From: Ranitomeya imitator
Lineage: Eukaryota
Reading direction: 5' to 3'
Assembly (NCBI RefSeq): GCF_032444005.1
Contig: NC_091291.1
Location: 19,158,001-19,222,000 of the forward strand
DNA length: 64,000 nt
The translations under genes and the position numbers were made by a program. Under the pieces are notes generated by a model, which was not told the origin of the DNA, ran no database searches, and saw only the letters and a program-made list of their open reading frames with translations. Within the stretch, counting starts at the first letter, position 1; the number at the start of each line of letters is the position of its first letter. Of this stretch, positions 14,701-55,714 are shown piece by piece.

Positions 14701-15224
14701 AGAGAGTTGCAATAGCCTAGACGAGAATGAATAACAGTGACATTAGGCATTCTTGATGAGTGAAAGGCAGAATGAAGCTGAGGGTGTGTTAGATTAATGG
14801 AGATTTATAAATGCAGTGCACGAGAATACAGATTGACTCTGGATGACAGGAAGACGCTATGTTCGAACAATTATTGTTTTGTTGTTGAGTTAATAAAGTT
14901 AAAAAGGAAGAACAAAAAGGCTTACAGTGTGGAGACTGATTGTAGATAACGCATCATTCCACAGATCAGATGCTTTTGCCTGGACTGCGTGTACTATTGT
15001 GAAGGAAGAAAATATAAATTTTCATATTTCCATAGTTCATTCTTAATCTACTTAGACTGCTGAATTAAGTCTTTTATGTTTTGTCCTACAGTTGGAAGTA
15101 GATGAGCAAGAGAACATTTACAGTTTTTCTGATTATTCAGTTACGTCATTAACTGTTTTGCACAGCTGTGGGATGAATGCGATGTCACTACTGGTGCTGA
15201 CACTGCAGATGGGATGGGACTTAA

Positions 15225-16184: not shown

Positions 16185-16272
16185 TTAAAACTGTAGCAAA
16201 ATCAGTATAGACTTTAGTGAGTAAAGATCGAGCTCTCACCAAGGCAATTTCTCTTCAGATTAATAACTGATA

Positions 16273-17469
16273 ATGGATTCTTCTATCAACATCATCAGTG
16301 AAGAAGAAGTCCAGAACATTCGGTCGGCTTTACAAGAAGGAGACATCTGTACAGCAACTGAAAGACTCGCGGAATCCCTCAGGGAAATAGAAAATGCCCC
16401 GTTGAACATTGCTATCATGGGTGAGTCAGGAACAGGAAAGTCCACTTTTGTCAATGCCATCCGTGGCATGGGCAATGAAGAAGAAGGCTCAGCCAAAACT
16501 GGTGTGGTAGAGACAACAGAGGTGCCAAGTCCATACAACCATCCTCAGTATCCTAATGTAACTGTTTGGGATCTTCCAGGAACAGGAACTCCAAATTTTG
16601 TGGCAGACGGTTATCTCCAGTCTGTTAAATTCAGTCGTTATGACTTTTTCATCATCTTATCATCGGAACGTTTTAAGCAAAACGACATTGACCTAGCAAA
16701 AGCGATTCAAGCTATGAACAAGAAATTCTACTTTGTGAGATCCAAAGTTGACTCCGACGTGCATGCTTCCATGATCCGAAGGAAGAAGACGTTCAATGAA
16801 GAGAATGCGCTGAATGAAATTAGAAATAACTGCATTCAAAGTCTTATAGAAGGGGGAATCCCACAGCCTCAAGTGTTTCTCCTCTCAGTCCTGGACCTGG
16901 ACAAGTACGACTTCCTCGAAATGCAGGACACTCTAGAAAAGGAACTTCCAGAACACAAGAGACACATATTCCTGATCTCTCTACCCCACATTTCTCTGCC
17001 AGTCCTTGAGAAGAAGCGTCAGGCTTTCAAGAAGGACATATGGAAGTTGGCTCTTCTTTCTGGTGAAGTGGCTATGGTCCCAGTACCAGGTCTGTCTGTG
17101 GCTTGTGATATAGGAATCCTGGTGAAAGCCATGACAAGCTATAAGAATGCATTTGGCTTGGATGAAAACTCTCTGGAAAGGTTGGCTGACAAGTTTGGTA
17201 AAGACGTCAGTGAATTAAAATCAGTGATCAAGTCCCCTTTTGTTTTAAAAGAGATAAATAAAGAGTTTGTCGCCACTTTAATAGCCAGAGGGGCCGCCGG
17301 GGGTCTCATGATAGTTGAGTATGTTGTTAGTAATGTCCCAATGGTAGGTAGCCTGGCAGCAGGGGGCATCTCCTTTGCTACCACTTATTGGATGCTCTAT
17401 GGCTTTCTTAAAGAGATTGCTGAAGATGCAGTGCGTGTTCTTACGAAGGCATTGGAGTCACCCGTTTAG
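16273..17469 (+). CDS. irgc: Immunity-related GTPase (IRG/p47, interferon-inducible GTPase 5 / IRGC-like), 398 aa; 'IRG1', type B
   Basis: Uninterrupted ORF with G1 GESGTGKS, switch I AKTGVVETT, G3 WDLPG, YDFFII, G4 RSKVD, LPEHKRH and C-terminal PVPGLSVACD. A splice acceptor (tttctcttcag, AG 16257-16258) lies 14 nt before the ATG, as expected for an IRG with the whole CDS in one exon. The symbol reflects family and synteny; exact orthology is not tested. Confidence 0.95.
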   Translation: MDSSINIISEEEVQNIRSALQEGDICTATERLAESLREIENAPLNIAIMGESGTGKSTFVNAIRGMGNEEEGSAKTGVVETTEVPSPYNHPQYPNVTVWDLPGTGTPNFVADGYLQSVKFSRYDFFIILSSERFKQNDIDLAKAIQAMNKKFYFVRSKVDSDVHASMIRRKKTFNEENALNEIRNNCIQSLIEGGIPQPQVFLLSVLDLDKYDFLEMQDTLEKELPEHKRHIFLISLPHISLPVLEKKRQAFKKDIWKLALLSGEVAMVPVPGLSVACDIGILVKAMTSYKNAFGLDENSLERLADKFGKDVSELKSVIKSPFVLKEINKEFVATLIARGAAGGLMIVEYVVSNVPMVGSLAAGGISFATTYWMLYGFLKEIAEDAVRVLTKALESPV

Positions 17470-17493
17470 GCATCTTTATCCTATACAATAATA

Positions 17494-19098
<1,605 letters not shown>

Positions 19099-21081
19099 TA
19101 TATAGAAAATACTACTAGACATGGGATACAATGAAAACATCTTTGACAAAATAATTAAAAACTGATTCAATGATTTATAAACGTGAGGCAACAAAGTTTT
19201 ACATTATCTTTGTGTTTGCTATCGTAGATTTAAAGTTGACACCTTCAGTGGAGGGGAATATATATATTTTTCTTACTGTACTTTTTTCACTTTACTTTTG
19301 AGATTCTTTAAAAATGTCGCACTTTGTTATTGCCTTACAGCCAAATTGTCTATTGTTGGACAATTACTCGATCTGACTGAGAATATGTCTCTTATCTGTC
19401 TTTTACTGATCTCCTTTCAGCTGATTTATGACCACATGAAAGATCAGCCGTCCTTCGATGTGGTCTGTGGTCATAAATCAGCGGAGAGGATCTCCGTAAA
19501 AGATGGATAAGAGTTACAACCTCTCATTCACAAGGAGCTCACTGACAGATTCAAAGGTTTGTTTACACAGGACGACCTGGCATAATAAGGCTTGACCAAG
19601 GACCAGGCAGGTCTGAAACATGTTGCCTGCGAGCGCAGCGGATATTTATTTTCTGCCTTTTAATTTTTGTGCTGTTGTGTTCAACCATAATTTGTGCCTT
19701 CATGATGAGGCTTCATGCACACAACCTGGTGATACTTGTATAGGTAAAACTAGTACCGGTGAGATCCATGGTCGGTGTCCGTGTGGCCATGTGCTGCATC
19801 CATGTGTCCATGTGACATCTGTATATCCGCGTGCTGTCCGTGCGCAATCTGCGGGCTGTCCATGTGCAATCAATGTGCTGTCAGTGTGACCCGTATGGAA
19901 TGAAATGCAGCATAAAAATTAAAACGTTTTATGTATCAAAGATGTTCAGAGATAGATAGCGATGAGGAACATGATAGATACATAGAAGAGAAATATATCT
20001 GTGTGCTATATAATCATATAATCAGTGCTTTGTATGTTTCTTTCTCTGTACTTGTTTTTGATTTCTAACTAATTAAATTGCATTAAAAAAACAATCTGTG
20101 TGGACTCCCGTGTAATTTTTATAACCAGCAGAGGGAAAGCTGACCGCTTGTGGCTAATATTAATAATCTGGGAAAGGGGCCTTTAGACCTAAATGTTGCC
20201 AGGATATTAATAATGGCGCACAGCTGTTTGCTTAACCTTTACTGGTTAGTTTATAGGGGTACTCCAAAAAAGTGATGTAGGGTCTCCCTATAAATTCTAA
20301 CCAGGAAAGGCTAAACTGACAGCTGTGGGTTAATATTAATAGCCTGGGAAGGGGTCATGGATATTGTTCCCCCTTCCCAACCTAATAACATCAGCCCTCA
20401 GTAGCCCCAGAAATGGTGCATCAATAAGATGCACCAAATCTGGCAATTATCCTCACTCTTCCCACTTGCCCTGGTGCGGTGACAAGTGGGGTAATAGGGT
20501 TGGGGTTGATGTCAGCCCAGGGATTAGTATGGAGAGGTGTTTATCAGACACCCCCATTAATAACCCCATAGTCATACTACATAGCCAGAAAAAAGACTTT
20601 TAATTGAAATAAAAGACAGCCCACCCTCATTTTCCAATTTATTACATAAAAATTCCTATTGTTCTAATCTCGGAAAGGGGACAATATCCTAAAAAGTTCC
20701 CAGGCTATTAATTACAGCTTACAGCTGTTTTCTTAGCCTCTACTGGTTAATTTACAGGGGACCCCAGAAAAAAATAACGTAGGGTCCTGCGTGTGGCTAG
20801 GGAACTTCAACACAGCTTCCCAAACATGTGATAAACCCCAGTTCATTTATGTTTTAAGGAGGGGGGAGGGGTAATCACTTTTTTCACACAGGGCCCTGTA
20901 GGTTTGGATTTCTTGTCCCCTTAATATTAAAGACCTTTATTTATAAACTAAATTTTGTAGATACTTGTTTTATCTTTGTCTAATATTTACATTTGTCTGG
21001 TGATTGGAAACATTTAATTGTGACAAACATGCAAAATAATAGGAAATCAGGAAGGGGGCAAACACTTTTTCACACAACTGT

Positions 21082-22975
21082 AGTTTCTATCTTTCACACT
21101 ACATACAAGCACCTGCCTATGAGGTACAACCAACAACTTGAATAAGTAAATACGACACAAGAGGTCTCCGAATCTAGACGATCTGTCCATAGATGGGAAA
21201 AAAAGGAGAAGAAACCAGATATGAAAAGGAAGCTACTCCGAGTGAAGGGCCACAGCTTATAACACACAGAAACCAATGCGACTTTTAGGGTTTGTCTTGC
21301 AGACAACTATAAAACATTATACTCAAGTCTGAAATGTTATAAAGGTCCAAAAAGACACCTGCGATCCCCGGATATCCTAAGGCTACGGTCATGGCCCAAA
21401 AACCTGTCCGATCTTCATCCAAAAAATATCAGATGTTTTTTCATCTCTATTGTCCCCTGTATGCCATCTTATATTATGCATCCAATTTACAAGACCAAAA
21501 TCAGTTCCCTACGTCAAGAATGGTACTGTATTTTCTGGCGTATAAGACTACTTTTTAACCCCTGAAAATCTTCTCAAAAGTCGGGGGTCGTCTTATACGC
21601 CAGGTGTCGTCTTATGGGGCAGGTGCGGAGTAATCTGCGGTCGCCGCATATTGTGGGGGGAGCGGTCCCAATGACAAGGTGAGGGGACGCCTCACCGGGA
21701 AGGTGTAAGTGAAGCAGAGGCAGAGAAGGAGATAATAGGATACAAGGGCGAGCCAGATGAGTGAAAGAGGAGTGTTTTTCTAGGCACAGCACCGCTCTCT
21801 CTCTTTTTTGCATACCCCTGGCATCCCAGACGCTGACAGTTTGCTTCACTTACACCTTCCTGGTGAGGCGCTAAATGTAAAAATCGGATGCTCTTTGGAT
21901 GATTTCTTTGGGATCCGATTTTTTATTTTTTTTTGTACATACCTAAATTTGAAGAGTTTCATTCAAAATATGGAATTGAATAGTGTATGGTGCAATTTTA
22001 TTTCACATGAACAATCAGTCCACGTTAAAACCTGTCATTTGGACAGGCAAGTTGAATGACATTGGTTCCGATGCTGTCCATGTGAGCTCAGTTTCTCCAC
22101 AGTGACCACTCGGACCTGTTGTGTGAACATAGCCTAGAAATGAGCTAGTGCTACAAGCAGGCGAGGTTGGGACAAGGCATGTAATGATCCTCAATAGACA
22201 TTTTGACATAGCTTTGGAAGACCTGGCCCGTCCATGATATACGGTATATGGTTGGATTTTCATTTGAATGTAATACAACACCACCCCTGACATTGATGGC
22301 CAAATGGAGCTTCTCTAGGATGGCGACTTTTAGAGAAGTGGTTGTCTTAACCACTTCAGAACAATTTTTGAGGCAAACTGTATTTTCGACACAGAAACCT
22401 TTGCAGACTGTTAAATCGTAAGAATGATTTTTTTTTAGATTTTATACAGTTTGGAACTTTGTACCAGACCACAGTGCCCGATTCATAAGGTGAGTCCCAG
22501 GGAAGATCATAGAATCCTAGAATGTTAGAGTTGGAAGGGACCTCAAGTGTCATCGTTTCCAACCTCCAGCTCAATGCAGGAGTCGCTAAACCATCTCAGA
22601 TGTCTGTTCAGCCTCCATTGAAGGAGAACGCATTCATGGCAGCCTGCTCCACTCATTGATCACTCTCACTGTCAAAAAGTTTTTTCTAATACCTAATCTG
22701 TGTCTTATCCCATTGCTTCTCGTCTTTCCTTGCGCCAATGAGAATAAAGCTGATCCCTCTAAGGAGGGGCAGCCCTTGAGATATTGGAGTTATTTATCTA
22801 ATCCTTCTACTCAACCCACATTGAGTTTTAACGTGTCCTCTTCCCGCTCTTCTCTCAGCAATTCAGACTGAAGAAAGGCAAAGGCTATAGATTCCCAAAT
22901 TTCAGTTCCTGAAATTTAATTGCAGAAAAACTTTTTTCCTAAATCAGAAATTTTGTAAAGTTAGAAAAAGTTCGT
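21082..22975 (+). pseudogene. Second degenerate relic of an IRG3-type gene (duplicate of 633-2520)
   Basis: Near-identical to 633-2520. ATA at 22887-22889 replaces ATG; the frame reads IDSQISVPEI*LQ vs MDSQFIVPENELQ. Confidence 0.7.
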
Positions 22976-23594
22976 GTTACAGTAAAGAAGGGGTTCAGTT
23001 ATGAACAACAGGGGGATATCCAGCTACCGAAAAAAAATCTATAAAAAAAACTTTCTATTTTTCATATGCTCTAAAAAAATAGAAATATATGAAAGTAGAA
23101 AAACTTTTCCCACGCGATTCGAGCGTTAAAAGCTCTTAATCATAGCACTATAGCTATCCAAATGAGTGTCGTTCAAACCGTTCCCTTCTGGAACCTATCC
23201 CTCTCCCCCACATGTGTAAAGGAGAAAAACCTATCACAACTAGAAAACATGTAAATGTATATAATACTTATCTCAAGCACACCTCACTGGCCCATGCATA
23301 GTGACTAGTGTTGAGTGAACGTGATCGGATAAGGCGTTATCGGAGGATGATTGGGGGATGATTGGCATGTTCAAATAATATGTTTGAGTCCCCACGGCTC
23401 TTCAACAGCCGCAACACATGCAGGGATTGCTTGTTTGTTAGGAATCCCTGCATGTGTTGCGGCTGTCGAAGAGCCGCGGGGATCACAAATATTTTTGTAG
23501 AACGCCGAAGACACTCAGTTAGCAACTGAGCATGCTCTGATAACGCCTTATCCGATCATGTTCGCTCATCACTAGTCACTAATAGTGACCTGTC

Positions 23595-24372
23595 ATGAGC
23601 CAGTTTATCGCCACCTTCTTGATAAAACACAGTGGACCTACACCAGCAGATGACATGGCTCCCCAAACCATCACTGATTGTGGAAACTTCACACTAGACC
23701 TCCAGCAGCTTGGATTGTGGCCTCTCCACTCTTCCTCCAGACTCTGGGACCTTGATTTCCAAATGAAATGCAAAATTTACTTTCAACTGCAAACAACACC
23801 TTGGACCACCGACAACAGTCCGGTTCTTTTTCTCCTTGGCCCAGGTAAGACGCTTCTGGCATTGTCTATTGGTCATGAAGTGGCTGACACAAGGAATGTG
23901 ACACTTGTAGCCCATGTCCTGGTACGTCTGTGTGTGGTGGCTCTTGAAGCAATGACTCCAGCAGCAGTCCACTCCTTGTGAATCTCCTCCAAATTTTTGA
24001 ATATCCTTTTCTTAATGCGGTTTTCCCGGTTGCTTGTGCACCTTTTTCTACCACACTTTTTCCCTCCACTGAACTTTCCATTAATATGCTTGGATACAGA
24101 GCTCTGTGGACAGCCGGCTTCTTTAGCAATGACCTTTTGTGGCTTACCCTCCATGTGGAGTGCGTCAATGACTGCCTTCCGGACATCTGTCAAGTCAGCA
24201 GTCTTCCCCATGATTGTGGAGCTACTGAAACAGACTAAGGGACCTTTTTAAACGCTTAGGAAGCCTTTACAGGTGTTTTTTGTTAGTTATTCTAATTTAT
24301 TGAGATAATGACTTTTGGGTTTTCATTGGCTGTAAGCCATAATCATCAACATTAAAAGAAATAAACACTTGA
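23595..24372 (-). mobile_element. Truncated Tc1 (duplicate of 3169-3960), further frameshifted
   Basis: ORF fragments 23873..24211, 23694..23972 and 23579..23773 correspond to 3153..3797. Confidence 0.85.
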
Positions 24373-25034
24373 AATAATGTACATATATATAGAAATATAC
24401 CTATATACTTTATATACACAGACTATAGACACATGACTTGCACATATATACTAATGGGCCATCGTACAGTGTGGGGGCCACGGTAGGGACCATAATACAG
24501 CATGAGGGCCCCTGTGGGGACTATCATCTTTTGGGCCACTGTAAGGGCCATTATATAGCATGGGGGTCACTGGGAGGACCATCATACAATGTGGGGGGCC
24601 ACTGTGAGGGCCATCATACCTCGAGGGTGTCACAGTTGGGGCCATCATACAGTGAGGGGGGACTGTTGGTACCATCATATAGCATGCAGGTCACTGTTGG
24701 GTCCATCATACAGTTTGGGGGATACTGTGGGGGCCATTATACAGCACCTGTGCTATTTGGCGGCCCTAATATAGAGTTGGGGCTACTGTAGAGGATGTCA
24801 CACTGTAAGGTGACTACTATGGAGGCTATCATACAGCATGGAGCCTAGTGTGAGGGTCATCATATAGCGTGGGGGCATCATACAGCATGTTGACTACTGT
24901 GGGGGTATCATACATTGCAGGGGTATTATACTATAGGGAAGCTGTGGGCCCATCATACTGCATATAGGAGAGCCGAGGACCCATCAAACTATATACAGGG
25001 GAGCTGTGGAAACATCATACTATGTACAGGGGGA

Positions 25035-25666
25035 TAATATAATAGATACAGCCCAACATGGACCAAAACATATGCGATCTCATACACATGCATGTAGCCA
25101 TGTGTTCACACCGTGAAAAGCAGAGATCGCATAACTATAAATAACTACCGGTACTAAGGACACTCCAATAAGCATACATAGAAACCAGGAGAAAAAATAG
25201 GAGTATACGTCCAAGGTTTTTTATGTAAGAGGGTATCAAATACAAATTTTATTTCATCAAAAATATAAATACAAACACATCACATAGCATGACAAATTGT
25301 ACATTGTGACAATGAGGGAGAAGTAAGGAACAACACTGAAAAAAGCCGGGGGAAACCACTGGAAATGTCCGTATTATAAGGTAAGGTGCAGCTAGTGCAT
25401 ATCACAGAATGGGTAAGTAGTAAGTTACACGGAAACTGTCAGTATTAGGCACTGCATCATATATCCCCAATCAAGAGTTACAACCCGGTACAACGCACTA
25501 AGTGTCAACCATCCATGTCAGAATCTTACCCATTCTACGGACCACCAGGAGTTACCACCGGAGCCCCAACGCGCGTTTTGCGTCGGCTTCGTCAAATTTG
25601 CATTTGATACCCTTTTACATAAAAAACCTTGGATGTATACTCCTATTTTTTCTGCTGGTTTCTATG
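25035..25666. mobile_element. Penelope-like retroelement fragment specific to duplication copy 2
   Basis: 14-bp direct repeat TATGTACAGGGGGA at 25021-25034 and 25667-25680; internal inverted repeat about 25175-25250 vs 25598-25672; degenerate hammerhead-like core on the minus strand at about 25563-25597. Confidence 0.55.
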
Positions 25667-28226
25667 TATGTACAGGGGGAGCTGTGAGTCCATCATACTG
25701 AATATAGGGGAAACTGTGGGCCCATCATGCTGTGTGTAAGGGAACTTTTGGACCATCATATAGAACTGTGGGGGACGTTACACTGGGTATAGAGGAGCCG
25801 TGGGCCCATCATATTGTGCATAGAGGAGCTGTGGGGGAATCTCACTGTGTATAGGGAGCTGTACATGGGGGTCTCAGGGGACATTATTACAGCAGGTGCA
25901 GCTGTAGGAACACACATGGCAGCAGTGGCTCCACATTGGAGTATCAGCAGGATTAGGAGTTTGCCTAGGTTGGGAATAGATGGGAACGGTACTGGAAATG
26001 TGTTAAATAAAATATGTCTTTGCTGTAAATTCTGCAGATGAGTCTTGGCTGGAAAAAGTTGTCACTTTAATCTGGGTCAGATTGAAAAGACAAAAAAAGA
26101 GAACCCCATCAGAAAAAACGTCATCTATAACTGTACTGTGATCTCTTACTTGTTCTGCAGGACTGATATCTACCACTATATGGTCACCGTGTGGCCGTGT
26201 TGGTCTTTGTATAGAGATTATTTTCAGTAAAAACACAGTTGCTGAGGTTTCCCTATAATCGCAATTAGGGTGAGCCACCGTAACTGTAAACATACGTAGT
26301 TAACTTAAATGTTTCCTCCCCCCCCCCAAGCTTAACCGTCTCTAGACAATGGAAATGGCATAAGGCCAAGTTTCTCTTTAGAAAATGTCACGTAACTTTC
26401 AATTGTGTAGTATTCACTCTCAAACTGCTTACGGCTTTGTGATAACCGCATGTTGCTGAGGGAGCCAAGTCATTTTTCAAGCTTCGACGTATCAGTGGTA
26501 ATAGTGACAGCTCCTCTACTTTCCTGAAATCCCAAGGAACACCATTACAGGTGAGAGATTCTTCCTTTTTATACTCACTGATGTTTATGGTGGGCAGAGC
26601 AAAGAGGCAAAATTCGGGGGCTCAGAAGCAGGACACCCCTTTGGTTTGTGGTCGTGTATTGGTTGTGATTTGCGATAAGAAAGGGCTGAGACTGATTATA
26701 TAGACACATAGAAGAAGTAACTACGACACCAACCCAACTTTTGTAAGTATAAGTACCATAACTCTACTGAGAAGGTGACTGCTCAAGGTCATCGGTAAAA
26801 ATGGGAAACTCATCTAAGAAACATGAGAAGCAATCGCAAGAGAAGAAGCTTACATCAGGAGTTGGAGAAGGCTTAAAAATATTCTAAAATGTTTTAAGCT
26901 TGCTACTAAGAGTATGATGGCGGCTACTTATATTTGTTAAGGTCAACTATGGTGGATTAGGTGCTCTTAAATATCATGATAATTGTTATAAGGCCACCTG
27001 ACTGACGTATAAAGATCAGCCACACCTTCAGTGGATAATAGAAGGCTCATTTAATGCTTATTGATGGTCCACCTAGAAGTAGAAGGTAGGTGATTGTAAG
27101 AAGCTGAATGTGGAGCTCCATGAGAAAAGGTGGCAAAGATACGTGATGCAGATCCATCTCCATATAAGATGTTACCCCAAAACTCTACAGTAGAGGAGAG
27201 CGAGGGTGATGAAACTTAATTTTGCTCCCCCTACCATGCGCCTGCAGAACAATCGTAAGCACAATTTGGGGAACCAGTTTTCTACTTCTCTCGACTAGTC
27301 ATCCGCCCTCTCTACTGAACCTATAACTTCAACTTTCATAGTACTTTCTCCGACAGAGAACAGTGGAATTGAAAGGTGGACCATGAATTCACTCCTGGGT
27401 CTGACATTAAAGTATAGCATTCCGAAGACCATGGAAAAAAAAGCAGGTTTGTGAATCCCAGGGAGCATGTGGAAAAGGTGATCTGTATTCCCAAATGGTT
27501 GGGTCAGATAACTAGAAGAAAAGCATAATATCTTGGTATTTGGAGGAAAAGTTTAGGAAAGCTGTTAGACCAAGAAGGAGGTCCAATTTTGGGGAGGTAG
27601 AGAAGCTTAAAGGGAACCTGTGTAGCAATTACCTGCCCTATCTGCCAAGGCAGTTAGACATAAAAGGTGGACGGGGTATATGGATAGAGGGCAGGAGAGC
27701 TGCAAGTGCAATGTCCCACCTCAAAGCACTTGAAGCTTGTTTGCATGCGATTTAAAAGTTGGATTTCCCAGAAACTACAAAACGGATTTCTACAATTAAG
27801 GTATGGATTAAATCAGTATGAAAGCAGTTGTATATGTGCCATTGGTTTGAGTTGTAAAATCGGCATATGAATTTTTCTTCAAGCAAAAGCCCAAGTAAAC
27901 ATTAGGGAGATAAAGCAAGAAGGGCAAGGTGCTACTGCCACCAGTAAAAGAAGCAGTCAGCTGATCCAACCTACATGCCACTAAGAGAGGTGGCTCTCTC
28001 TGGAGAAATGCATGAACGAGCATACTGTATGTACACACAAAGGGACTGATGTACACACCAAGGGACCAACGTAAGACAGCCAACTATAAGTACTGTCGTT
28101 GTCGACTTGCCTTACCTCCAGCATTGTCAACAAAAGTGTATTTAAAAGGAACATTGACTCCAGAAAACTCAGAAAGGAACTTATGATGATGTAACGCTTC
28201 ATTAAAAGTGCTGTGCTGGAGAAGTA

Positions 28227-35947: not shown

Positions 35948-38229
35948 TATATTCTATTTCAATTTGTGGAAAAGTGCACTGTAATAGTCTATGTGCTATT
36001 GCCATCTACGAGTTTGAAATGTGTTCTGCTCCAAATCTATTGATCTGAAAGACATACCGTAATTCAAGATCCAAGAAGACCATATTGTCTTTGGCAATGT
36101 GAGCTGTAAATGATAAATCCCATGTGTTCTTCTAGAGTTGTTCTACAAAAGAGGTTGCCACATATTCTGTGCCAGACTCAATGATAAATAAGTCGTCGAT
36201 ATATCAAGGGTTATATTTAATATGCCTGACATGGGAACTAGACAAGACTGACGACGGGGACTCGAAACTCTCCATAAACGAATTTGCGGAACCTGGGATG
36301 ACTCGAGTACCCATTGTCGTGCCAAGTCACTGCAGGTAAAGCGCATCCCTAAAATAGAATAGGTTATGCTCCAGGACGAATTTTGACCCGCTCAGGAGTG
36401 GCCACTGTTCAGATTGGATAGTCAGATTGGTGGAGACTCAACATGCGGCATCTCATGGGGGAATAACTCGGTCCATACTCCGACCACTGGAGATGGAGCT
36501 ATAGAAACAGCCGAGACTGACTGGCACCAAAGGTAGGGGGCATGGTCAGATGATCGAGAAGTCATTGCATCTACCCACTTCAGTACCATTATTGCCCTTT
36601 ACCTGCACTTTACACTTTTAATAGTTGGCAGGATGGATGATAATAAACAGCAGCGCTTGAAAATTCCAGTAGGAGCTTCACTGAATAACATTACAAAGTT
36701 TAATAGATCCAATTTGCTGATGAAAGACCAGCGAGAAAAATGTCCAGGAGTCTCCCAAAAAGCGAGAACACCGCCTAGAATCCTGAAGGTGTTGGAAAAC
36801 ACCGGGGACCCTGAAATCCTCCTAAACTTTAAGAAATGCAGGTTCCAGGAGGCCTTGGCCATACCCACATGCAGTATCAAGAGGTGCGGGAAAGTAATGT
36901 TGGGGACATGATCAAAAAAGGCATAAATAGAAAAAAAAAATTCTGTCCGAGTTTTCTATCCTCCTTTGCTGTCGATTCTGCACAACATATTTCTCGTGTG
37001 TAAATGAGATGTGTTCAAATCACATTCATTTTGGTGCTACTGAAAATCTCTACCGGTTTACTACCGCAAAGCAGGGCATAAAATCCGCAGCTTTTTTTCT
37101 TTTTATATTTTTAAAAATTGGGTTTAAAGAAAATTTATGAAGCGTTTGGCTCTTAAAGGCTTTGTGTTTCTGTGAACATTCAACTTTAATGCGGTCTTAA
37201 ATTAAGAGATGCTCGGAAAAAAAGTTAAAATGAAAGAATAACAAATGCTATCATCATTGAATCTGAATGATCTGATTGATGGACTCTCTGAACTCCCTCT
37301 GCAGCAAGCACTAGACAGTGCAATACCCAGACTATAGAATGTAAATGGTGTAACATTTTAAATGAAACCCAACTGCAAAAATTATTGTTAGCTCCAAATA
37401 CATTTTGCTGGTGATTTCTGCAGAGTCTGAACAAAGGATCAAAGACTCTAAACTCACTTGTGGGTGTTTCCATGACTTCATTGCCCGGTTCCTTACAGGT
37501 TTCTGTACAACCCGCCATGAAAGACAAAGATCTTTATATTTATTTTGCTAAGGTTTTTTTTCAGGGCTCACACATTTTGCTTTCGATCTAATGGAAATTC
37601 GAAGCAATTGAAGTTAGTTGTGGATTTCTTTTCTATTCAATAGAGAAACTCATCAACAAACCTGCAACTGATCTGCTACAAGAATCGACTTGTTAAGGTT
37701 TGAAAAATCCACACCATAGATCAAATATCGCCATACTTATCAATTCTTTCAGACTGATTGGAATAATGGGAGACATTCCAAACTCCTGGAGGAGTTGGAA
37801 AACTCTCTTGAGAATGACAAATTTTCCCGGAAAGGAAGTTTCAGGAGGCTTTGATTTTTGTCCAAATGCACTTTCAAGAGGTGTTGATAAGAAATGTAGG
37901 GCTCAACTAAAGTTGCACATAAATATCACAAGGGCCTATTAATCAAAAAAGGCGAGGGGGATGCAACAGGTATTACGAGTTTTGCAGGGTTCTCTGCAAA
38001 AGGATTATTGTTGGGTTTGCAAATCTTTTAGCTCAGTTATATTGAAAACATTTCCTGCTCGAGATCCTCATTCTTCCGGCTGCCAATTCTTTAAAGTTAT
38101 CAGGCACAAAACATTTCCGCTACTGTAAATCACTGCAGAATTTCCACAAAGAAAAGACAGAGAAAATCTGCAGCAGCTTTAGGACAAGGAGGGGCGAAGC
38201 AGAGCAAGATCCTGGATGCAGTTTAGTTG

Positions 38230-38476
38230 GGTGGAAGTGGAAAGAGAAACCTCAGACGTGGTCTCCAAGTTATGATGTTTACACATTTTTCATCCTTTTT
38301 GATCCGGCCTAGATTTGTAGTCTGTCCTGCAATCAGCAGTTTCAGTGCTACAGCACATCCTCTCCCGCCCAGTGACGTCTCCTCTTTCAGTTTCTACAAT
38401 TCACATTATGTACAAGCACCTCCCTATGACGTCACATCTATAGCTTGATAAGTAGGAAGAAAGAGCAGAGAGCAAG
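38230..38476 (+). promoter_or_regulatory. Candidate interferon-responsive promoter and non-coding exon 1 of IRG3
   Basis: ISRE-like GGAAAGAGAAACC 38239-38251 and TTTCAGTTTC 38385-38394; GC box 38362-38370; TGACGTCT 38373-38380; perfect CRE TGACGTCA 38427-38434; donor CAAG|GTATGT at 38477 that could pair with the acceptor at 42314. Confidence 0.55.
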
Positions 38477-41400
38477 GTATGTAAGATCTCATTATCAAGA
38501 GGATCTGTCTATGGATGGGGAAAAAGGGAGAAGAATCGGGGTATAAAAAGCAAGCAACTCCAATGTGCATGGTCATAGATTAACACACTTCTCCGACATT
38601 CTGCACGATCAGTTTCACTGATTATCACTTTGCTGTTGCAGATACGTTGTGACTGACAACAAGAAAAATTCCACTTTATATTTTTGCATTATCGTTTTTC
38701 AAAGTGTCCAGAAATGAGAGCATTATAGAATTGGATATTTTAGTGGTTGCCCCGAGAACAGCTTTAAAACGTTATACACAAGTCTGAAATGGTAGCTACA
38801 ATTCTAAGAATGAGCTGAAGCTACAGAGATGTGGCTGTGTATGATCGACCAGGATAGTACCATGTGTGGCACAACATCTGACTGCCAGTATGGTCACTTT
38901 GAGAAAATCGCACTAAATTCAACCCAGTTAGAGGTTTGATAGCAAGTTGCACTTGACTTCGCCTCTATACGTTGCTACTAGTGATGAGTAGAGATGGGCG
39001 AACTTGAACAGTAAAGCTTGGCATCCGTATCGAACATCTACTGTTCAGGCACAGATATCAAAGGCGTTCCCCCCCCCCAACTCCGAGTGTTTCTAATGCT
39101 ATCATGTGCATGACAACACGGCAAACACTGCTTCTGATCGGCGGTAAGATCATTACCGTCGGTCAGACAGCCGCAGTTCCCAACCTGTCGAATGAGAGCG
39201 AAAGACCGCAGCTGTCACTGGCATCAGATGATGGGACTACTCCCTCCATCATCCTACACTTGCTGCCGCTAATAACAGATAGAGCAGGTAGCGGCTGATG
39301 GGAGTATTAATCAGCCAGGACCTGTGCTCTAAATAAATTAAAGAAAAATGACTTGGGTTCCCCTGTATTTTTTGATAACCAGCCAGGCAAAACTGACAGC
39401 TGCGGGAAGCAACCCTCAGCTGTCAGCGTTACCAAGGCTGGTTATCAAAAAGAGGGTTCCCCACATTGTTTTTTTTAAAATAAATAAAAACAAAAAAAGT
39501 GTGGAGGTTCCCTTCATTTTTGACAAGCAGCCAAGCTAAAACAAGCATCTGAGGGCTGGTATTCTCAGGATGATAAAGGTCCATGTATATTGGTCCGCCC
39601 TTCCCTAAAAACAGAAGCCCGCAGCCGCCCCAGAAAAGGCATATTAGATGTGCCAATTCTGGCTCTTTGCCCGACTCTTCCCACTTGCCCTGTAGCGGTG
39701 GCAAGTGGAGCTCATATTTGTGGGGATGATATCACATTTGTTTTGTCCAGTGACATGAAGCCCATGAATTAGTAATGTAGAGGTGCATGTAAGACACCTA
39801 TCAGTTACTAATCCTATAGTGGTATTGTAAATAGACACAGACAAAATAAAGTCTCTTGAGGTACCGTCACACTGAACGATATCGCTAGCGATCCGTGACG
39901 TTGCAGCGTCCTGGCTAGCGATATCGTTCAGTTTCACAGGCAGCAGCGATCTGGATCCTGCTGTGCCATCGCTGGTCAGCGCAGAAAGTCCAGAACTTTA
40001 TTTCGTCGCTGGACCTTCTGCAGACATCGCTGAATTGGCATGTGTGACGCCGATTCAGCGATGTCTTCACTGGTAACCAGGGTAAACATCGGGTTACTAA
40101 GCGCAGGGCCGTGCTTAGTAACCCGATGTTTACCATGGTTACCAGCATAAACATCGGGTTACTAAGCGCAGGGCCACGCTTAGTAACCCGATGTTTACCC
40201 TGGTTACCAGCGTAAACGTAAAAAAAAAAAACCACTACATACTTACATTCCGTGTCTGTCCCCCGGCGCTGTGCTTCCCTGCACTGTCAGCGCCGGCCAG
40301 CCGTAAAGCAGATTACAGTGGTGACGTCACCGCTGTGCTTTCCGGCTGGCGCTCACTGTCAGTGCAGAGAAGCAGAGCGCTGGGGGACAGACACGGAATG
40401 TAAGTATGTAGTGTTTTTTTTTTTTTACGTTTACAGAGATGTAGATCTGTGTGTTGTCAACATAGAGATGATACTGAAAACTGTGAGATTCTATGAGCTG
40501 TCCCAGGCTGTCTTAGGTTTGTCCCACACGTCCAGATAATTCCGGTACCGGAATTATCCGTGTCCGTGTGCTTACGTAGCACATCAGTGTGGCACACGTG
40601 CGGCAGCCGTGTGCCGACTGAGGACCACACGGACCGTGCAGGAGGCAGCGCTACAGTTAAGTGCTGTCCCCTGCGTGCGGTGCTGAAGCCGGTATTCATC
40701 TCTTCCTCCCAGCAGCGTTCGCTGGAGAGAAGGAATGAATAATCAATTTTTTTTTCTTTCTCCTTAAAAATAAAGTTTGTGCGTCCCCTCCCGCCTCCCA
40801 TCCCCTGTGCGCCCCCCACTTGCCAGGAAATACTCACCGACACCCAGCTCCAGCGATGTCTCCTCTCAGCGCCGGCAGCAGGCCCTGTGTGAGCGGTCAC
40901 GTGGTCCCGCTCATTACAGTGAGGAATATGCGCATATTCCTCACTGTAATGAGCGGGACCACGTGACCGCTCACACAGCACAGGCTGCAGCTGCTGAGAG
41001 GAGACATCGCTGGAGCTGGGTGTCGGTGAGTATTTCCTGGCAAGTGGGTCCGTGAAATCATGCTGACATGTGCAGAGACACATTGATTTTAATGTGTCTA
41101 CATGAGTCAGTCTCTCCGGTACGTGAGGAAACTGTCACCTCACATACCGGAGCCACTGACGTGTGAAACCGGCCTTATGGATGCCTCTCCATTACTAAGC
41201 TGAGGGCTTGATGTCATCGAACAATGCAAAGGTAACATTAACCCCACAAATATGAACCCCACTTGCGACCGCTACAGGGCAATTCGGAAGAGCTGGGCAA
41301 AGAGCCAGAATTGGCACATCTACTAGATATGACTTTTCTGGGCGGCTGTGATCTGCTGTTTTTAGGCTGGGGGGGCAATAACCATGGGCCCTTACCAGAC

Positions 41401-42338
41401 TGAGAATACCAACCCCCAGCTGTCTGCTTTAGCTTGGCAGGTTGTCAAAAATTGGGGAGACCCCACGTCGTTTTTTAAATTATTTAAATAATTTAAAAAA
41501 CAATGTGGGGACCCCGCTATTCTTGATATCCAACCTTGCTAACGCTGACAGCCAAGGGTTGCAGTCCGCAGCTGTCACTTTTGCCTGGCTGGTTATCAAA
41601 AATACAGCGGACCCAGGCATTGTTTAATTATTTATTTAGAGAGCATGCACCTGTTGATGAATACTCACATCACCCGACGCCTGCTCTCGCTGTTATTAGC
41701 AGCAGCACCCAACAGTGATATGAATAGGCACCAGTGTTGCAACAGTTTTATAAATGCAGGCTCTGACAGTGGCTGGAGACATTTCTTTATGATGGTGCAG
41801 TAGACAATGCAGTAAATACCCACAAAAGAGAATATGAAAGGCAGCACTCACCAGTCTCCTCTGTGAATTAAAAGACCTTTATTTTAACATAATCCAGGCT
41901 ATTAAAATAAAAGACAATTCACAGAATGACTGGTGAGTGCGGCCTTTCACATTCTCTTTTCTAGATATTTGATGGGAGCAGTAGTCCCATCAGCTGACAC
42001 AATTGACCAGAGGTAAACTCTTTACCTCTAATCAGTGTGGGAACCGCGGCTCTATGACCAGCGGTAATGATTTATCCCGATCAGAAGATGTTTGCTGCGA
42101 TGTCATGCCCTATTGAAAACACGTGCATGCTCGGCCAAGTAAAGTGAGCATGTGTATGGGGGTCGAATCAATAGCCATTAATGGACATTCTCTGCTAGAT
42201 CAATTTAGGACTACATTGCTCAATTCTGGTCAGACCCAAAAGCCGATTTTTTCTTTTTGCCTTTAATCTGCACACAATGGGTTCTAATGTGTCGCCGTCT
42301 TCTTTTTCCCTCAGGCGCTTGAGACTGAAGAAAGAGAT

Positions 42339-43568
42339 ATGGATTCCCAATTTATAGTTCCTGAAAATGAACTGCAGGAGATGAAGAACTTCTTTGAAAA
42401 TAGAGATCTTGCAGAAGCTGTAGAAAGTGTGAAGAGATGCCTGGAAGACATTGACCAAGTCACGTTGAATGTTGCCGTAACTGGAGAATCGGGATCAGGA
42501 AAGTCAACTTTTATCAACGTAATCCGAGGCCTTGGCGATGAGGAAGAAGATTCTGCCAAGACAGGCGTGGTCGAGACAACCACAGTCCCATCACCTTATT
42601 TACACCCGCATCACAAAAACGTGAAATACTGGGACCTTCCCGGGATCGGAAGTCCTGTATTTAATCCGATGGATTATCTGCAATTGGTGAAGTTTCACCA
42701 ATATGATTTTTTTCTGATCATCACAACCGAACGCTTCAGAGAATGTCACATCCTGTTAGCACAAGCCATCAAGTCCATGGGGAAGAAGTTCTACTTTCTG
42801 AGATCCAAAATAGACTCGGCAATAAAAGGATGTCGACGAAGAAGGACAAACTACTGCAAGGATGAAGATCTACTGAAGAAAATCCACGATGACTGCGTAA
42901 ATGGTCTCCGAGCTGGAGGTATCGAGAACCCTCGAGTGTTTCTAATTTCCAGTCTAGAACCTGAAAAGTATGACTTCTACTTGATCCAGAAAACGCTAGA
43001 GGACGAACTTCCGAGTCACAAGAGACATGTATTTCTTTTGTCTCAGCCCAATTTTTTCCACCAGGCCGTGGAGAAGAAGAAAAAGGTCTTTCTATCGCAA
43101 ATCTGGAAATGGGCCATCGTCTCCGCTATGAACGTTGTGACGTCACAAAGGTCGGGTGCGAGTAGTATGTCGTGTGTTCCGTATTTATCAGCCAATGGTG
43201 ACCTCACCCTCATGGTCAATGTTTTGGAAGAGTACAAGAAAGCTTTCGGACTGGACGCGAGATCCCTTAAAATGCTATCGGATACCTTTGGGAGAGATCT
43301 CGAAACTTTGAGATCAATGATCAGAACCACAACGGCTTTGGAGGAGATAACTCCCGAATTGGTTTTCCATCACCTAAAGAGTCAGGGTCTGACGGACATG
43401 GGTCGTATAGTGACAGCATGTGTAAATCAGATTGTTCCGCAAATTGGCACATTGGCAAGTGGAGGAGTTGCCTTCGGGACGACTTACTGGATACTAAGCA
43501 GCTTCTTATCAGCTATGGCAGAAGATGCTACCAAGGTGCTGACGATGGCATTAGCGACTTCTGACTAA
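42339..43568 (+). CDS. irgc: Immunity-related GTPase (IRGC-like), 409 aa; 'IRG3', type A, adjacent to smg9
   Basis: G1 GESGSGKS, AKTGVVETT, WDLPG, G4 RSKID, LPSHKRH. Acceptor tctttttccctcag (AG 42313-42314) upstream of the ATG. Convergent with smg9, as human IRGC is with SMG9. Confidence 0.95.
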   Translation: MDSQFIVPENELQEMKNFFENRDLAEAVESVKRCLEDIDQVTLNVAVTGESGSGKSTFINVIRGLGDEEEDSAKTGVVETTTVPSPYLHPHHKNVKYWDLPGIGSPVFNPMDYLQLVKFHQYDFFLIITTERFRECHILLAQAIKSMGKKFYFLRSKIDSAIKGCRRRRTNYCKDEDLLKKIHDDCVNGLRAGGIENPRVFLISSLEPEKYDFYLIQKTLEDELPSHKRHVFLLSQPNFFHQAVEKKKKVFLSQIWKWAIVSAMNVVTSQRSGASSMSCVPYLSANGDLTLMVNVLEEYKKAFGLDARSLKMLSDTFGRDLETLRSMIRTTTALEEITPELVFHHLKSQGLTDMGRIVTACVNQIVPQIGTLASGGVAFGTTYWILSSFLSAMAEDATKVLTMALATSD

Positions 43569-45706
43569 CTCTGGCACGTTCACCAAGTAGCCTTTTAACA
43601 ACAGGTGGTGCCTAGAAAGGTTGTATGAATCCCTTTGGTGAAAGATCAGAACAGGATGTAAAACTTTATCTCACGTTACATCATCTATATACCCACCATA
43701 CACATGAAGAAGCAATCTTGTGTTCCACTACATGGTGTCTCCGTTTCATACAGAGGATTTAGATGAGAATGTCTTCATAATGCAACGATCCAAGACGACA
43801 AAGTTTCCTGCGACTCCATAACACATTAGGACGGTGCTATATTATGTGCCCAAAGACCTCTATGGGCACCATTTTACAACTACGTACAACTAAGATGCGG
43901 TCACTGGAAATATCAAAAATGTTTTTCTTATGTAGTATAAATGTGTTTATAAGAACAATTGTTGTTTTTTGCCTTTTTTTATTAATTTTGGGAGGAGCAA
44001 GAAAAATAGCACAGTAAGGTCATAGCATCATAATACAGCTCAATATTACCTGCTAACACTCGATTCTTGTGAATGGCACCTCGCAGCCAAAATCTTCTGC
44101 TGAGAAGTTCCTTTAAAAGTGGTCCTTCAGAATTTAGAGGTCTGGGGGTCCCGTGCTCCAAGTAGCTCTCCAGCTGTAGCTAAACTCCTTATTGGATGAA
44201 ACGGTCTAGTGACCCTGACGCATTTTATAAATCCTTAATCCAGGGTTGAGAAATAAAATCTTGAGTTTAAGAAGTTTTAATCTTTATTTAAAAAAGAAAA
44301 GAAAATGAAGTTAAAGGGTTATTCTCAAAACATGATAGGGGATAACTTGATGCTTGCTGACGGTCTAACTGCTAACCTGCAGTGGAGGTGTGCATGCCCT
44401 GCACTAATCATTGTCTATGGGATTGCGGAGTACATCGCTCAGCTATATCTGTCAGTCCCATAGACAATGAATGGAGTAGATGAGGAGCATGAGCAAATGC
44501 ACTACAGTACGGGGCTGTAGATCCCGTTTTCAGGGTTCCAGATCGTGAACACTGTGAATGCTGGAAGTCCCAGCGAACAAACCTCCAATGATCAGCAAGT
44601 ACTTCACTATGCTCTTTTGGGAATAACCCTGTAAAAATGCTTTTTTTGCTTTTTAGTCTCAGAACGAGGATCCTCACTAATCTGCTTCACATCAGGATGG
44701 GACTACACCGAAAAATGAAAGGTGCTCTTAAAAAAAAAAAAAAAAATCAAAAAACAGTTGAGTGAGACATGGCTGGAATGATCCCCCGATACGGACATAT
44801 TTGTGCTTGTCCCGCCACCCACCTATTAAATAGCTTGTGACATGGTATATATCAGACTTCTTCCCCGGATCATCAGAGCCTTGTAAGTCTTCTCCAGTCA
44901 CATCCAGAGCTGCATTTACACTTCTTCTCATGATTTCTTAGTGACTGGACCAGCAGCCATAGAGTTGACAACATTTAGCAGAACTGTTTCAGCAGCTTTT
45001 GGGGGCGAGAACGCTGTAACCCCGGATGAGGACAAAGTATATTGGTACTCCTTCATCTGAAGGCGGCAGAGGTGTGCGGGAATCCGGCAAAATGGTGAAT
45101 GCTCTGGGAGAGTATCCACCATGTAACTCGGCTTCAGGACAATAGAGGTGACGCTTTATACAGACGTAGATACTCTAACTACCACCATGCTATACTTTGA
45201 TGCTTACCGGGGAGTGCTGGGAGTTATAGTTCCTCAACAGTTGGCGAGTGGAAATGTATGGTTCTGGAGCTGTCAGTCTTAACGTAATTCCACAAGCATC
45301 GGGGGAAAAAAAAATTCCATCCGTATAGAACAGAACTGATTTCTGTAAGTTACATACACCGCTTGTTCAGGTTGTTGCGTTTTTATTGTCCATCATCATC
45401 GCTGGGATAAGTGGCGCCCCCCGACAGCTGTGGAAGGTATTTACAACGTCTCGTGATCAGTACAGATTATCACATCCCGGCGCTCGTCTATTGCAGGCGA
45501 TTTACTGGTACAGACAATTGGACTTGTACCGCCATCTTTGGTCACGCTGCCTCGATCGACGGCCGTAACTTCAGAGTCCTCCAAATCGTGTCCTGCTGGT
45601 AGGAATCCGTATCCCGGACTCCTCACGTTGTGACTTCTGGAGTTGGGTCCTGTCTATCAAGCAGAGCGCACAAAGTCCGCACCCACCGAGGCTCCGCCAG
45701 TCTTTC

Positions 45707-48700
45707 CTAGCCCAGTAATCTGCTGTACTCAGAAAGAGCCGATGACTTCTTCACCCCGTCCCAGATACGAGCGGCGTAGTGAAACCTAAAAATGGAAAAA
45801 TATTTTAAAACTAAGAAAGATACAAAAAATCCTGTTGAGTTTCACCTGTAGTGACAGCGCTCATGGGCAGTAATACTAAGAAAGTAAGCCCGAGATATGT
45901 GACATGTCCCTGCACGGCCTCTAGGGGGGCGCGACTGCTGCTCAGCGGGCTCCTTACCAGTTCTTTTCGGTCAGGATAGTGTGTGACAGCTGCGGGCGGG
46001 ACATGGACATCATCTGGCTGCGGAGCTTACTGATCATGGTGTGGAAGCTGGGGTGCCCCTTGTAACCCGGCAGGAGCAGAGGAGGAGCAGCATTTCCTCC
46101 TGACCCTGGAAAAAAAACAAACACAAATATACATAAAGTTTTAGTAACTAAACACACAAAATGAGTGACTAAGCCAACACCAGAGAAAGGAAGGGGAGAA
46201 AATGACAGAAGAGAGAAAGGGAACGAAAGGGGAGACAAGAAATAGAGGGAGAAAAGGGAATAGAGAGAAAATGAAGACGAGTGTGAGGTTGCTAAGAGCG
46301 AAAGACAGTGTGATGGAGTGTGTGAGGCAGAGAGAACCCAAGAGTGCTGTGAGAGGAAAGGTGACGGCACCGCCTGGAGAATGGAAGGCGAGCGAGGGGG
46401 AAGAGAGGGAAAAGGCGAGCGAGGAGGGAAGAAGGGAAAAGGCGAGCGAGGGGGAAAGAGAGGGAAAAGGCGAGCGAGGGGGAAAGAGAGGGAAAAGGTG
46501 AGCGAGGGGGAAAGAGAGGGAAAGGTGAGCGAGGGGGAAAGAGAGGGAATAGGCGAGCGAGGGGGAAAAAGAGGGAAAAGGCAAGCGAGGGGGAGAAGAG
46601 AGGGAAAAGGCGAGCGAGGGGGAGAAGAGAGGGAAAAGGCGAGCAAGGGGGAGAAGAGAGGGAAAAGGCGAGCAAGGGGGAGAAGAGAGGGAAAAGGCGA
46701 GCGAGGGGGGAAGAGAGGGAAAAGGCGAGCGAGGGGGGAAGAGAGGGAAAAGGCTAGCGAGGGGGGAAGAGAGGGAAAAGGCTAGCGAGGGGAAGAGAGG
46801 GAAAAGGCGAGCGAGGGGGGGGGGGAGGAGGAAAGAGAGGGAAAAGGCGAGCGAGGGGGAAGAGAGGGAAAAGGCGAGGGACGGTGAAAAGGCAATTGAG
46901 GGGGAAGGGATGGAAAAGTCGAGCGAGGGGGGAAAGGCGAGTGAAGGTGAAAAGGCGATTGAGGGGGAAGAGAGGGAAAAGGCGAGCAACACAAGAGAGA
47001 AGGGAAGAGAGGGAAAACGGGCGCACCTGAACAGAGAAGGTGAGGGAGAGAGGGAGCTACTGAGAGAAAATGAAAGGCAGCTAGTGATGAGCGAGTATAC
47101 TCGTTGCTCGGGGTTTCTAGAGCACGCTCGGGTGACCTCCGAGTATTTGTTAGTGTTCGGAGATTTCGTTTTCATCGCCACAGCTGAATGATTTACAGCT
47201 ATTAGCCAGGCTGAGTACATGTGGGGGTTGCCTGGTTGCTAGGGAATCCCCACATGCAATCAAGCAGGCTAGTAGCTGTAAATCATTCAGCTGCCGGGAT
47301 GAAAACTAAATCTCTGAGCAATCATAAATAAATACCAAGCAACCCCAAGAAATACCATAAACCCCAAGCAACGAGTATATTCGCTCATCACTAAAGGGAG
47401 TGAAAGTGACAGCGTGAGAAAGAGCATGAGACACCAAGAATATTGTGATAGATATCTGGGAGTGGGCGGTGACGTACCTGATTTGGACACTGTCTCATCA
47501 GTATCATTCTCCATGGTTGGTATTAAAAATAAATTCACCTTCGATTCCAGGAAATCATAGGATAATCCAGGGAAAATGTTGCAGTCCAACATGGAGACAG
47601 TGCCTTAAAGAGAAGAGAGCAATTATAGGAAGGGTGACATTAGGCACACATCACCCTGCAGACACGGCCCGGGTGCCACGTCTGCCCCTCACTGCACTGG
47701 ACTGCGGGAGCCGCGGGGGATTCATTGCTCACAGTCGCCTCTACAGATGAGCTCTGGTTCTCCATGTGTCCGGCCAGGAGGGCAGGACAATATTTATTTT
47801 CTCCATATTCTCATTCTCCGGCCTCAGCGCTAGGTTCAGGACTACGTCCGCCGTCTCTGGTATCAGTCTATGGCGTCCGTTACCTTTGTAGTGAAGCTGT
47901 GAGTGAAACATCAGCTTGTCGACCACCAGGTTCATCTGCTTCAAGGATCGGGGACAGAAATCTTCTCTTTTGGCTTTATTCTGTAGAAACACTAAAAAAA
48001 ACATAAATGTTAAATAGAAATCAGGTAAAAGGATAATAATTGATTTCCTATTGGTTCAGGATTATGCGGCTTTTGCTTGTCGGTCTGGTGGTTTATTCAC
48101 CTCCCCAACTTCATGGACGCTATTATGGGAAACGCCGGCTACTAAGGATCTTTCAGGTCTGGCCATTAATAAAGAGACAAAAGTTAAACAACCAAAAGCC
48201 GGCGATGTCTCCAGACACGAGGACTTACCTATGTGCGGGTAATACTCAATGCCGTCATCACCTCCGGATGATCCGCTCGATTCGTGGCTGGGGGACGGGG
48301 TGGACGGTTTTAACATCTCGGCCGTCTGCAAAAACCTAAATAACCAGATATAACAAAAAAATGTTATTGCTTAATTTTGAGAATAAAAAAAAAAAAAAGA
48401 ATCAGTCCAGGTCACGGGCTCGTTTTTTACGTCTTGTACCGATCCGATCACCGTGCATCCACCACATGCCTGAGATCTCAGAAGATGGAAAGAACTGATA
48501 GATTCACTGTCATGTACTGCACCCAGCGATTTCCATCAGTCCTATAGACAATGAATGGAGCGGTGGTGCATGCAAGACTTGTGACAGGAGGAGTCCCCCA
48601 GCGATAATACATTTATTACCCCCCGTATTGTGGTGTATGACTGGACCCCTTTAAATTCTTACCTGTATAAATTAAAGTCGGTGAACCAGTCCTGGACAAC

Positions 48701-55365: not shown

Positions 55366-55714
55366 CAACAAAGTAGTGAGGGGAATAACCGGACGGCGAC
55401 GTTGTAGCGGTGGCAGCCTCAGACGGACAGTCATAGAGGGGCAGCCTCAGACGTTACTTTTCTAGTGGGGGGCAGCCCCGGACGGCAATGTCCTAGCGGG
55501 GGCAGCCTCAGTCCGCACAGTTGTAGTGGGGGCAGCCCGGGCCAGCACCATTGTAAGGGGGGTACTTTTGGACACTGCTCAGCACAGCTACAGAGGGGAA
55601 GGCATTTTCAGGACACACCAGGACAGTCTTCTCCTAGGACAGGAGCACTACACCCCCAGCCCTCCTCCATGGACTCAGTATGTCTCCTCTCCCCGAGACC
55701 CCGCTGTCACTCAC

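Follow-up and report, generated by a model that had tools for sequence, protein, structure and literature searches.

We analysed 64,000 nucleotides of the Ranitomeya imitator genome (NC_091291.1, positions 19,158,001 to 19,222,000; hereafter the window), which hold three immunity-related GTPase (IRG) genes, here called IRG1, IRG2 and IRG3, followed by smg9 on the opposite strand. The window probably covers the part nearest smg9 of a large tandem array of IRG genes of the GKS type, situated at an old tetrapod smg9-linked locus that diversified early in anurans and was reduced in mammals.

Three intact IRG genes and the gene they face

The window sequence is free of N runs, and the list of open reading frames (ORFs) for its plus strand contains three stop-free, single-exon IRG reading frames, all of the GKS type (Table 1). 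Their proteins match the Pfam family IIGP (PF05049) from end to end (E = 2.5e-115 for IRG1, 1.8e-112 for IRG2 and 7.6e-90 for IRG3), covering positions 1-374 or 5-372 of the 375 in the profile. Against the structures in PDB the alignments with mouse Irgb10 (7C3K) and Irga6 (1TQ6) are full-length, with scores of 325 and 324 bits for IRG1 and of 255 and 229 bits for IRG3, respectively. The three proteins share 70.9% (IRG1/IRG2), 46.8% (IRG1/IRG3) and 43.8% (IRG2/IRG3) identity, and IRG1 is 100% identical to the gene product (P0001) at 19,174,273 of the R. imitator record CM064368.1 (GCA_032444005.1). Searched by tblastn with these proteins as queries, the window showed no additional IRG copies or relics.

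Like the two mouse proteins, the frog IRGs keep the GKS P-loop, the threonine, glutamate and threonine of switch I, DLPG and SKxD. All three have GESGTGKS or GESGSGKS (GxxxxGKS) at G1, DLPG at G3 and SKVD or SKID at G4, and the switch-I string AKTGVVETT is present in each. Residues T76, E80 and T82 of IRG1 correspond to T102, E106 and T108 of Irga6, taking as constant through to the G domain an offset of +26 that comes from the ends of the HMMER alignment (IRG1 6-388 on Irga6 chain 32-404) and not from a residue-by-residue comparison. The N-termini read MDSS in IRG1 and IRG2 and MDSQ in IRG3, without the Gly2 on which the myristoylation signal of Irga6 depends. A G1 motif of the GMS type (GxxxxGMS) was found in none of the three window genes and in none of the 73 named anuran IRGs examined, all of which are GKS; in this the frogs are unlike the mouse, with its GMS (IRGM-type) regulators. 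Gene layout is again as for Irgb10 and Irga6, with one long coding exon behind one or more 5' non-coding exons and the genes in tandem clusters. A polypyrimidine tract and AG precede each coding exon, and the distance from exon start to ATG is 14 nt in IRG1 and IRG2 and 24 nt in IRG3.

Beyond IRG3 lies smg9, in the opposite orientation, so that the two genes converge tail-to-tail with 2.1 kb between the IRG3 stop (43568) and the smg9 stop (45707). The identity of smg9 was established from exon pieces searched one at a time rather than from a joined protein: two of them match the PDB chain 'Protein SMG9' (6L54_C; E = 8e-19 and 3e-14), and the same pieces were recovered in tortoise, cat and Dendrobates tinctorius. 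A Pfam scan of these pieces, which are short, gave no match to the SMG9 family.

An earlier, sequence-only reading of the window had described a plus-strand IRG array converging on a minus-strand smg9, with three intact GKS-type genes that keep the switch-I residues and lack an N-terminal Gly2. Each of these statements is borne out by the reading frames, the full-length IIGP matches, the motifs and the facing stop codons. Its count of three is right for the window and too low for the cluster, in which a fragment and two or more additional intact IRGs lie upstream.

The smg9-linked arrangement in other tetrapods

The same order of genes is found in a second dendrobatid and in amniotes. D. tinctorius has an IRG3 orthologue (93% identical) and then smg9 on the minus strand. 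The tortoise Chelonoidis abingdonii has a 412-aa IRG on the plus strand, SMG9 on the minus strand 2.2 kb further on, and a tandem multi-IRG gene just upstream. In the cat (L008:5992-13737), the order is a true IRGC of 464 aa (N-terminus MATSRLPAVPGEEETTILMAKE...), a spliced 'IRG5-like' gene and, on the minus strand, SMG9; the gene order Kcnn4-Smg9-Irgc is described as conserved among mammals in a recent preprint. Together these observations support the window locus as the positional counterpart of the amniote IRGC/SMG9 locus. The sequence-only reading had gone further and treated the frog locus as the IRGC locus itself; position bears this out, but the gene that faces SMG9 in the cat is IRG5-like and not IRGC.

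IRG5-like genes are present in a monotreme, marsupials, bats, carnivores, artiodactyls and a mole, and one Myotis gene model (P0338) joins IRGC and IRG5-like in a single fusion. For humans, whose single-copy state we take from the literature, Bekpen et al. (2005) report IRGC and IRGM only, IRGC being a testis gene that is not induced by interferon. Since multi-gene IRG arrays stand at SMG9 in the tortoise and, with two genes, in the cat, the single human IRGC looks derived.

The frog genes thus share their SMG9-convergent position with mammalian IRGC (CINEMA) and IRG5-like, and differ in it from mouse Irga, Irgb, Irgd and Irgm, which lie elsewhere than the smg9/IRGC locus. Cat IRGC shares 45% identity with IRG1, and the G domain of cat IRG5-like shares 52% with it. 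At 392-409 aa, the frog proteins are without the C-terminal extension of IRGC, which in the cat brings the protein to 464 aa with an acidic tail and was described by Bekpen et al. (2005) for a total of about 463 aa. The sauropsid smg9-linked IRGs (tortoise P0173 and those of squamates, 400-412 aa) are like the frog genes in convergence, in having neighbouring IRGs, in length and in their GKS motif. All window IRGs are single-domain, unlike the fused tandem-domain neighbour upstream in the tortoise. The model of that neighbour is on the minus strand and gives a 1269-residue product of several tandem IRG domains (L007:1-2932); turtle and squamate IRGs of 600-700 aa with 1.5 or 2 domains are common among the protein matches.

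Gene trees and the age of the frog paralogues

We built a main tree of 104 rows (IQ-TREE, LG+C20 with posterior mean site frequencies, PMSF) and a second tree of 44 rows (LG+F+G4), which also served for approximately unbiased (AU) tests. In the main tree, all 37 neobatrachian rows, the three window genes included, form one clade with a support of 99 in the Shimodaira-Hasegawa-like approximate likelihood ratio test (SH-aLRT), and their sister is a urodele group (84). In the 44-row tree the frog rows are set apart by a branch with support of 99.4/97.

Within the frogs, the IRG3-type genes form a clade of their own (SH-aLRT 99) whose branching mirrors the species groups. The IRG3 orthologues look one-to-one, with a single best match across Neobatrachia and one copy per sampled species, at identities of 72-93% in Hyloidea and 51-57% in Ranoidea and Myobatrachoidea. 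The Phyllobates terribilis orthologue of IRG2 is P0050 (85% identity over 388 columns), and IRG1 likewise has one of its own in Phyllobates. Judged by the tree, the split between IRG3 and IRG1/2 is older than Neobatrachia.

Mammalian IRGC and IRG5-like form one clade in both trees (support 97-98), with IRGC on a long stem, and the sauropsid smg9-linked IRGs form a separate clade (support 99). In the best trees the frog IRGs stand in an anuran clade of their own, apart from the mammalian pair, with which they share the flanking smg9 synteny. Kaneda et al. (2022; PMC9232189) did not find IRGC1 in Xenopus or zebrafish, where other IRGs were found, which fits IRGC as a later, specialised offshoot; in the same paper IRGC is a testis gene on which the fibrous sheath of sperm depends, a structure that frog sperm is said to lack. 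IRGC may be a tandem duplicate from the mammalian stem whose partner, IRG5-like, was lost in humans. Our literature search found no paper on amphibian IRG clusters or on the frog 'interferon-inducible GTPase 5', and the RefSeq label 'interferon-inducible GTPase 5-like' is already attached to related copies on the same chromosome and to orthologues in other frogs.

Selection on the two gene types

Ratios of nonsynonymous to synonymous change (dN/dS), calculated by the Nei-Gojobori method, separate the conserved gene from the other two. For IRG3 they are 0.15 against Bufo and 0.10 against Rana, within a range of 0.10-0.23 across the Neobatrachia orthologues, and on these estimates IRG3 is under purifying selection, as has been described for mammalian Irgc (recent preprint). 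Between IRG1 and IRG2 the overall ratio is 0.50 and that of the C-terminal part 0.66-0.75; for IRG1 and its upstream copy (P0003) the two values are 0.43 and 0.92. None of the IRG comparisons exceeds 1.

Extent of the cluster and its duplication units

The cluster extends past the window: further upstream on this chromosome come P0003, at 242 kb and with 90% identity to IRG1, which has a partial IRG beside it, and P0097, at 298 kb and with 60% identity. In several other frogs, among them Bufo gargarizans, Rana temporaria, Hyla sarda, Dendropsophus and Nanorana, the IRG paralogues retrieved for a species come from a same-sized record, as would fit their lying together on one chromosome or scaffold.

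IRG1 and IRG2 sit in two collinear duplication units (Table 1). At the nucleotide level the first 4.6 kb of the units agree at 95.5%, the middle part at 87-90% and the coding exon at 82%. The synonymous distance between IRG1 and IRG2 (dS 0.32) is larger than the divergence of the flanks of the units, and each of the two genes has a separate Phyllobates orthologue; the flanks therefore look younger than the exons, perhaps through gene conversion affecting the flanks or through a mosaic duplication.

Transcription and putative promoter of IRG3

RNA evidence was sought for the IRG3 stretch alone (38000-43900), by mapping contigs from four public runs of four studies; the tissues of the runs are coded, and contigs give no expression levels. 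Each run contributed one contig of 1.5-1.6 kb whose match extends from 42312-42321 to the end of the stretch, leaving the genome at the acceptor 42314/42315, and in three of the four the 5' side carries a further 27-50 letters that could not be placed. The unique intergenic DNA of the stretch is uncovered in all four runs, deep cover being confined to repeats at 39.8-41.3 kb. Contigs that start at the acceptor, together with uncovered intergenic DNA, make the pattern of spliced mRNA: IRG3 is transcribed and spliced, with its one long coding exon behind one or more 5' non-coding exons.

The repeats themselves (39800-41350), which are situated in the interval from the putative exon 1 of IRG3 to its coding exon, have contig word depths in the thousands in all four runs and are transcribed or highly repeated elements.

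The putative promoter and first exon of IRG3 lie further upstream. The window has a single strict match to an interferon-stimulated response element (ISRE), GAAAGAGAAAC at 38240-38250. The ATG of IRG3 lies 4.1 kb downstream of it, and a consensus splice donor follows it after about 230 bp; near 38384, 140 bp from this match, the minus strand has another ISRE core. The block at 38200-38480 is 90% identical to its D. tinctorius counterpart, as against 76.7% for the wider block, and identity collapses past the donor. Such conservation fits a promoter and a short exon 1. Two weaker relatives of this region occur upstream of the other genes (Table 1).

Interpretation and competing explanations

We regard the smg9-linked locus as probably an old tetrapod IRG cluster, one that in amniotes contains IRGC and its neighbour IRG5-like. 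Anurans would have diversified the cluster before the neobatrachian radiation, giving at least two lasting lineages. The IRG3 type, which adjoins smg9 in both dendrobatids examined, is present as a single copy per sampled species and is under purifying selection. The IRG1/2 type is still duplicating, with change in the C-terminal helical domain that may be partly relaxed or diversifying. Mammals would have cut the locus down to IRGC and IRG5-like, and humans to IRGC alone.

Mouse Irga6 and Irgb10 oligomerise on membranes when GTP-bound. The window proteins have kept all the residues known to be important for catalysis by Irga6, which suggests that the frog IRGs, too, would be active GTPases that oligomerise on membranes in the GTP-bound state, likely in cell-autonomous defence, although without N-terminal myristoylation. 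With 73 of 73 anuran IRGs of the GKS type, none GMS, and no myristoylation signal in the window genes, membrane targeting and self-protection must differ from those of the mouse. The analysis shows the integrity, family, synteny and paralogue age of the genes and the transcription and splicing of IRG3; GTPase activity, membrane targeting, interferon control and immune function are properties that we infer for the frog IRGs by analogy, the immune role from family membership alone.

Several observations weigh against parts of this account. The evidence for an ancestral cluster is synteny in four species only (R. imitator, D. tinctorius, the tortoise and the cat), none of them a fish or a squamate. 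Bufo gargarizans, Rana temporaria and Nanorana showed no smg9 within 10 kb of their IRG3-type genes, and the single Microcaecilia IRG studied, a gene not orthologous to IRG3, had none within that distance either; because these genomes are large, we regard the missing smg9 as uninformative. Deep IRG branches are short and weakly supported. The AU test rejects none of three alternatives to the best tree (p = 0.81), namely a grouping of the frogs with mouse-type Irgb (p = 0.40), a single clade of all mammalian IRGs (p = 0.11) and a sister relation of the frogs to IRGC/IRG5-like (p = 0.21). The tree accordingly dates the frog duplications, and orthology with IRGC rests on synteny. For regulation, strict ISRE matches are at chance level in the window (one found, 0.67 expected) and both ISRE cores are altered in D. 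tinctorius, so that interferon control of IRG3 stays putative. Lastly, the tissues behind the IRG3 contigs being coded, testis-only expression is compatible with them.

The sequence-only reading had offered a different history, in which a single IRGC orthologue at smg9 expanded specifically in the dendrobatid or anuran lineage into a putatively pathogen-facing resistance cluster. Much duplication within the frog lineage is indeed indicated by the single neobatrachian clade with its urodele sister, and the IRG1/2-type genes are still duplicating, with raised C-terminal dN/dS. An expansion particular to this lineage does not hold up, however, given that the IRG3 versus IRG1/2 split predates Neobatrachia and that multi-gene arrays also stand beside SMG9 in tortoise and cat. 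The best trees, moreover, place the frog clade neither within mammalian IRGC nor as its specific sister, and true IRGC itself appears as a long-branched mammalian duplicate of IRG5-like (97-98). We therefore consider this history unlikely. Faulty assembly, through haplotypes left uncollapsed or duplicates misjoined, could also have produced some of the copies, a concern raised by the closeness of IRG1 to P0003 and of the first 4.6 kb of the duplication units, but this is extremely improbable: the window proteins differ from one another by 29-56%, each is matched by a separate orthologue in other dendrobatid genomes, an older and independent assembly contains P0059, which coincides with IRG2 in the tree at zero branch lengths, and the IRG3-smg9 arrangement is repeated in D. 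tinctorius.

A more serious contender concerns IRG3 itself, which could be a conserved housekeeping or tissue-specific GTPase, an analogue of IRGC or of the lipid-droplet IRG GM4951, leaving the IRG1/2 type as the only immune effectors. Its single-copy orthologues across Neobatrachia speak for this, with dN/dS values comparable to those reported for mammalian Irgc, and so does a promoter/exon 1 block that is conserved where its ISRE cores are not. Contigs in the runs of four studies fit poorly with narrow tissue restriction, even with the tissues coded, and at 409 aa IRG3 is without the C-terminal extension of the 464-aa cat IRGC; on balance we give the idea real but minor weight.

The proposal of an old smg9-linked cluster can also be extended into something bolder. 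The smg9 locus would then be the birthplace of the whole tetrapod IRG family and still the only IRG system of frogs, operating without GMS regulators or myristoyl anchors; IRGC would be a mammal-stem tandem duplicate of an smg9-adjacent immune gene, recruited to the testis; mouse Irga, Irgb, Irgd and Irgm would be later emigrants; and the conserved IRG3 could be constitutive and regulator-like, as the mouse GMS proteins are. We regard this larger picture as speculative and, taken as a whole, rather doubtful.

Other features of the window

The two Tc1/mariner-type transposons are both Sleeping Beauty-like, and the copy at 34340-35957 lies 1.2 kb beyond the IRG2 stop codon. At 98% identity and in inverted orientation, the pair look recently active. 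A purine-rich minisatellite of about 16 copies of 28 bp (46385-46889) lies within an intron of smg9 and is the cause of the strong GC and AT skew at 46-48 kb. From 270 nt upstream of the smg9 start codon runs a G+C-rich tandem array of about 75 copies of 32 bp (52979-55369; 93% matches), which produces long spurious ORFs on both strands, such as one of 799 aa at 52977-55376. The last part of the window (56553-64000) is an 86-bp satellite with a higher-order period of 339 bp, in at least 87 copies (94% matches), that runs past the window end.

Table 1. Genes, putative regulatory regions, duplication units and transposons in the window (CDS, coding sequence; UTR, untranslated region)
Feature	Position	Strand	Details
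Duplication unit with IRG1	1-17491	+	Collinear with 20450-33192
Third, weaker copy of the IRG3 exon-1 region	723-818		At the place expected for IRG1
IRG1 CDS	16273-17469	+	398 aa, GKS; exon start about 16259, after acceptor tctcttcag; 100% identical to P0001
Tc1/mariner-type transposon	17483-19103		98% identical to the inverted copy at 34340-35957; starts 14-22 nt past the IRG1 stop
Duplication unit with IRG2	20450-33192	+	Second copy, collinear with 1-17491
Partial homologue (69%) of the IRG3 exon-1/donor region	21082-21267	+	At the place expected for IRG2; may be its 5' exon
IRG2 CDS	31992-33170	+	392 aa, GKS; C-terminal helical part most diverged
Tc1/mariner-type transposon	34340-35957	-	Intact 340-aa transposase ORF 34558-35580; HTH_SB, HTH_Tnp_Tc3_2, DDE_3
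Putative IRG3 promoter and short non-coding exon 1	38200-38477	+	ISRE match; donor AAG/GTATGT at 38477/38478; conservation; no contigs mapped here
IRG3 coding exon	42315-43900	+	Acceptor 42314/42315; CDS 42339-43568 (409 aa); 3' UTR at least to 43900
smg9	45707-52710	-	12 exon-bearing pieces; start MSDSGHSQ... at 52710; last exon ...SEYSRLLG and stop, 45784-45707

Significance

The practical importance of the cluster is modest: these are typical IRGs with a presumed immune role, and existing annotation already includes related copies from R. imitator and other frogs. The three window genes are real, and the frog set, with one conserved and one fast-changing type, is one that could be used with existing transcriptomes from chytrid, ranavirus or interferon challenge. 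The multi-gene layout at smg9 looks old and widespread in land vertebrates. It ties the 'non-immune' IRGC of mammals to an ordinary multi-gene IRG cluster, kept beside SMG9 by frogs, a tortoise and the cat, which would give IRGC a concrete evolutionary origin.

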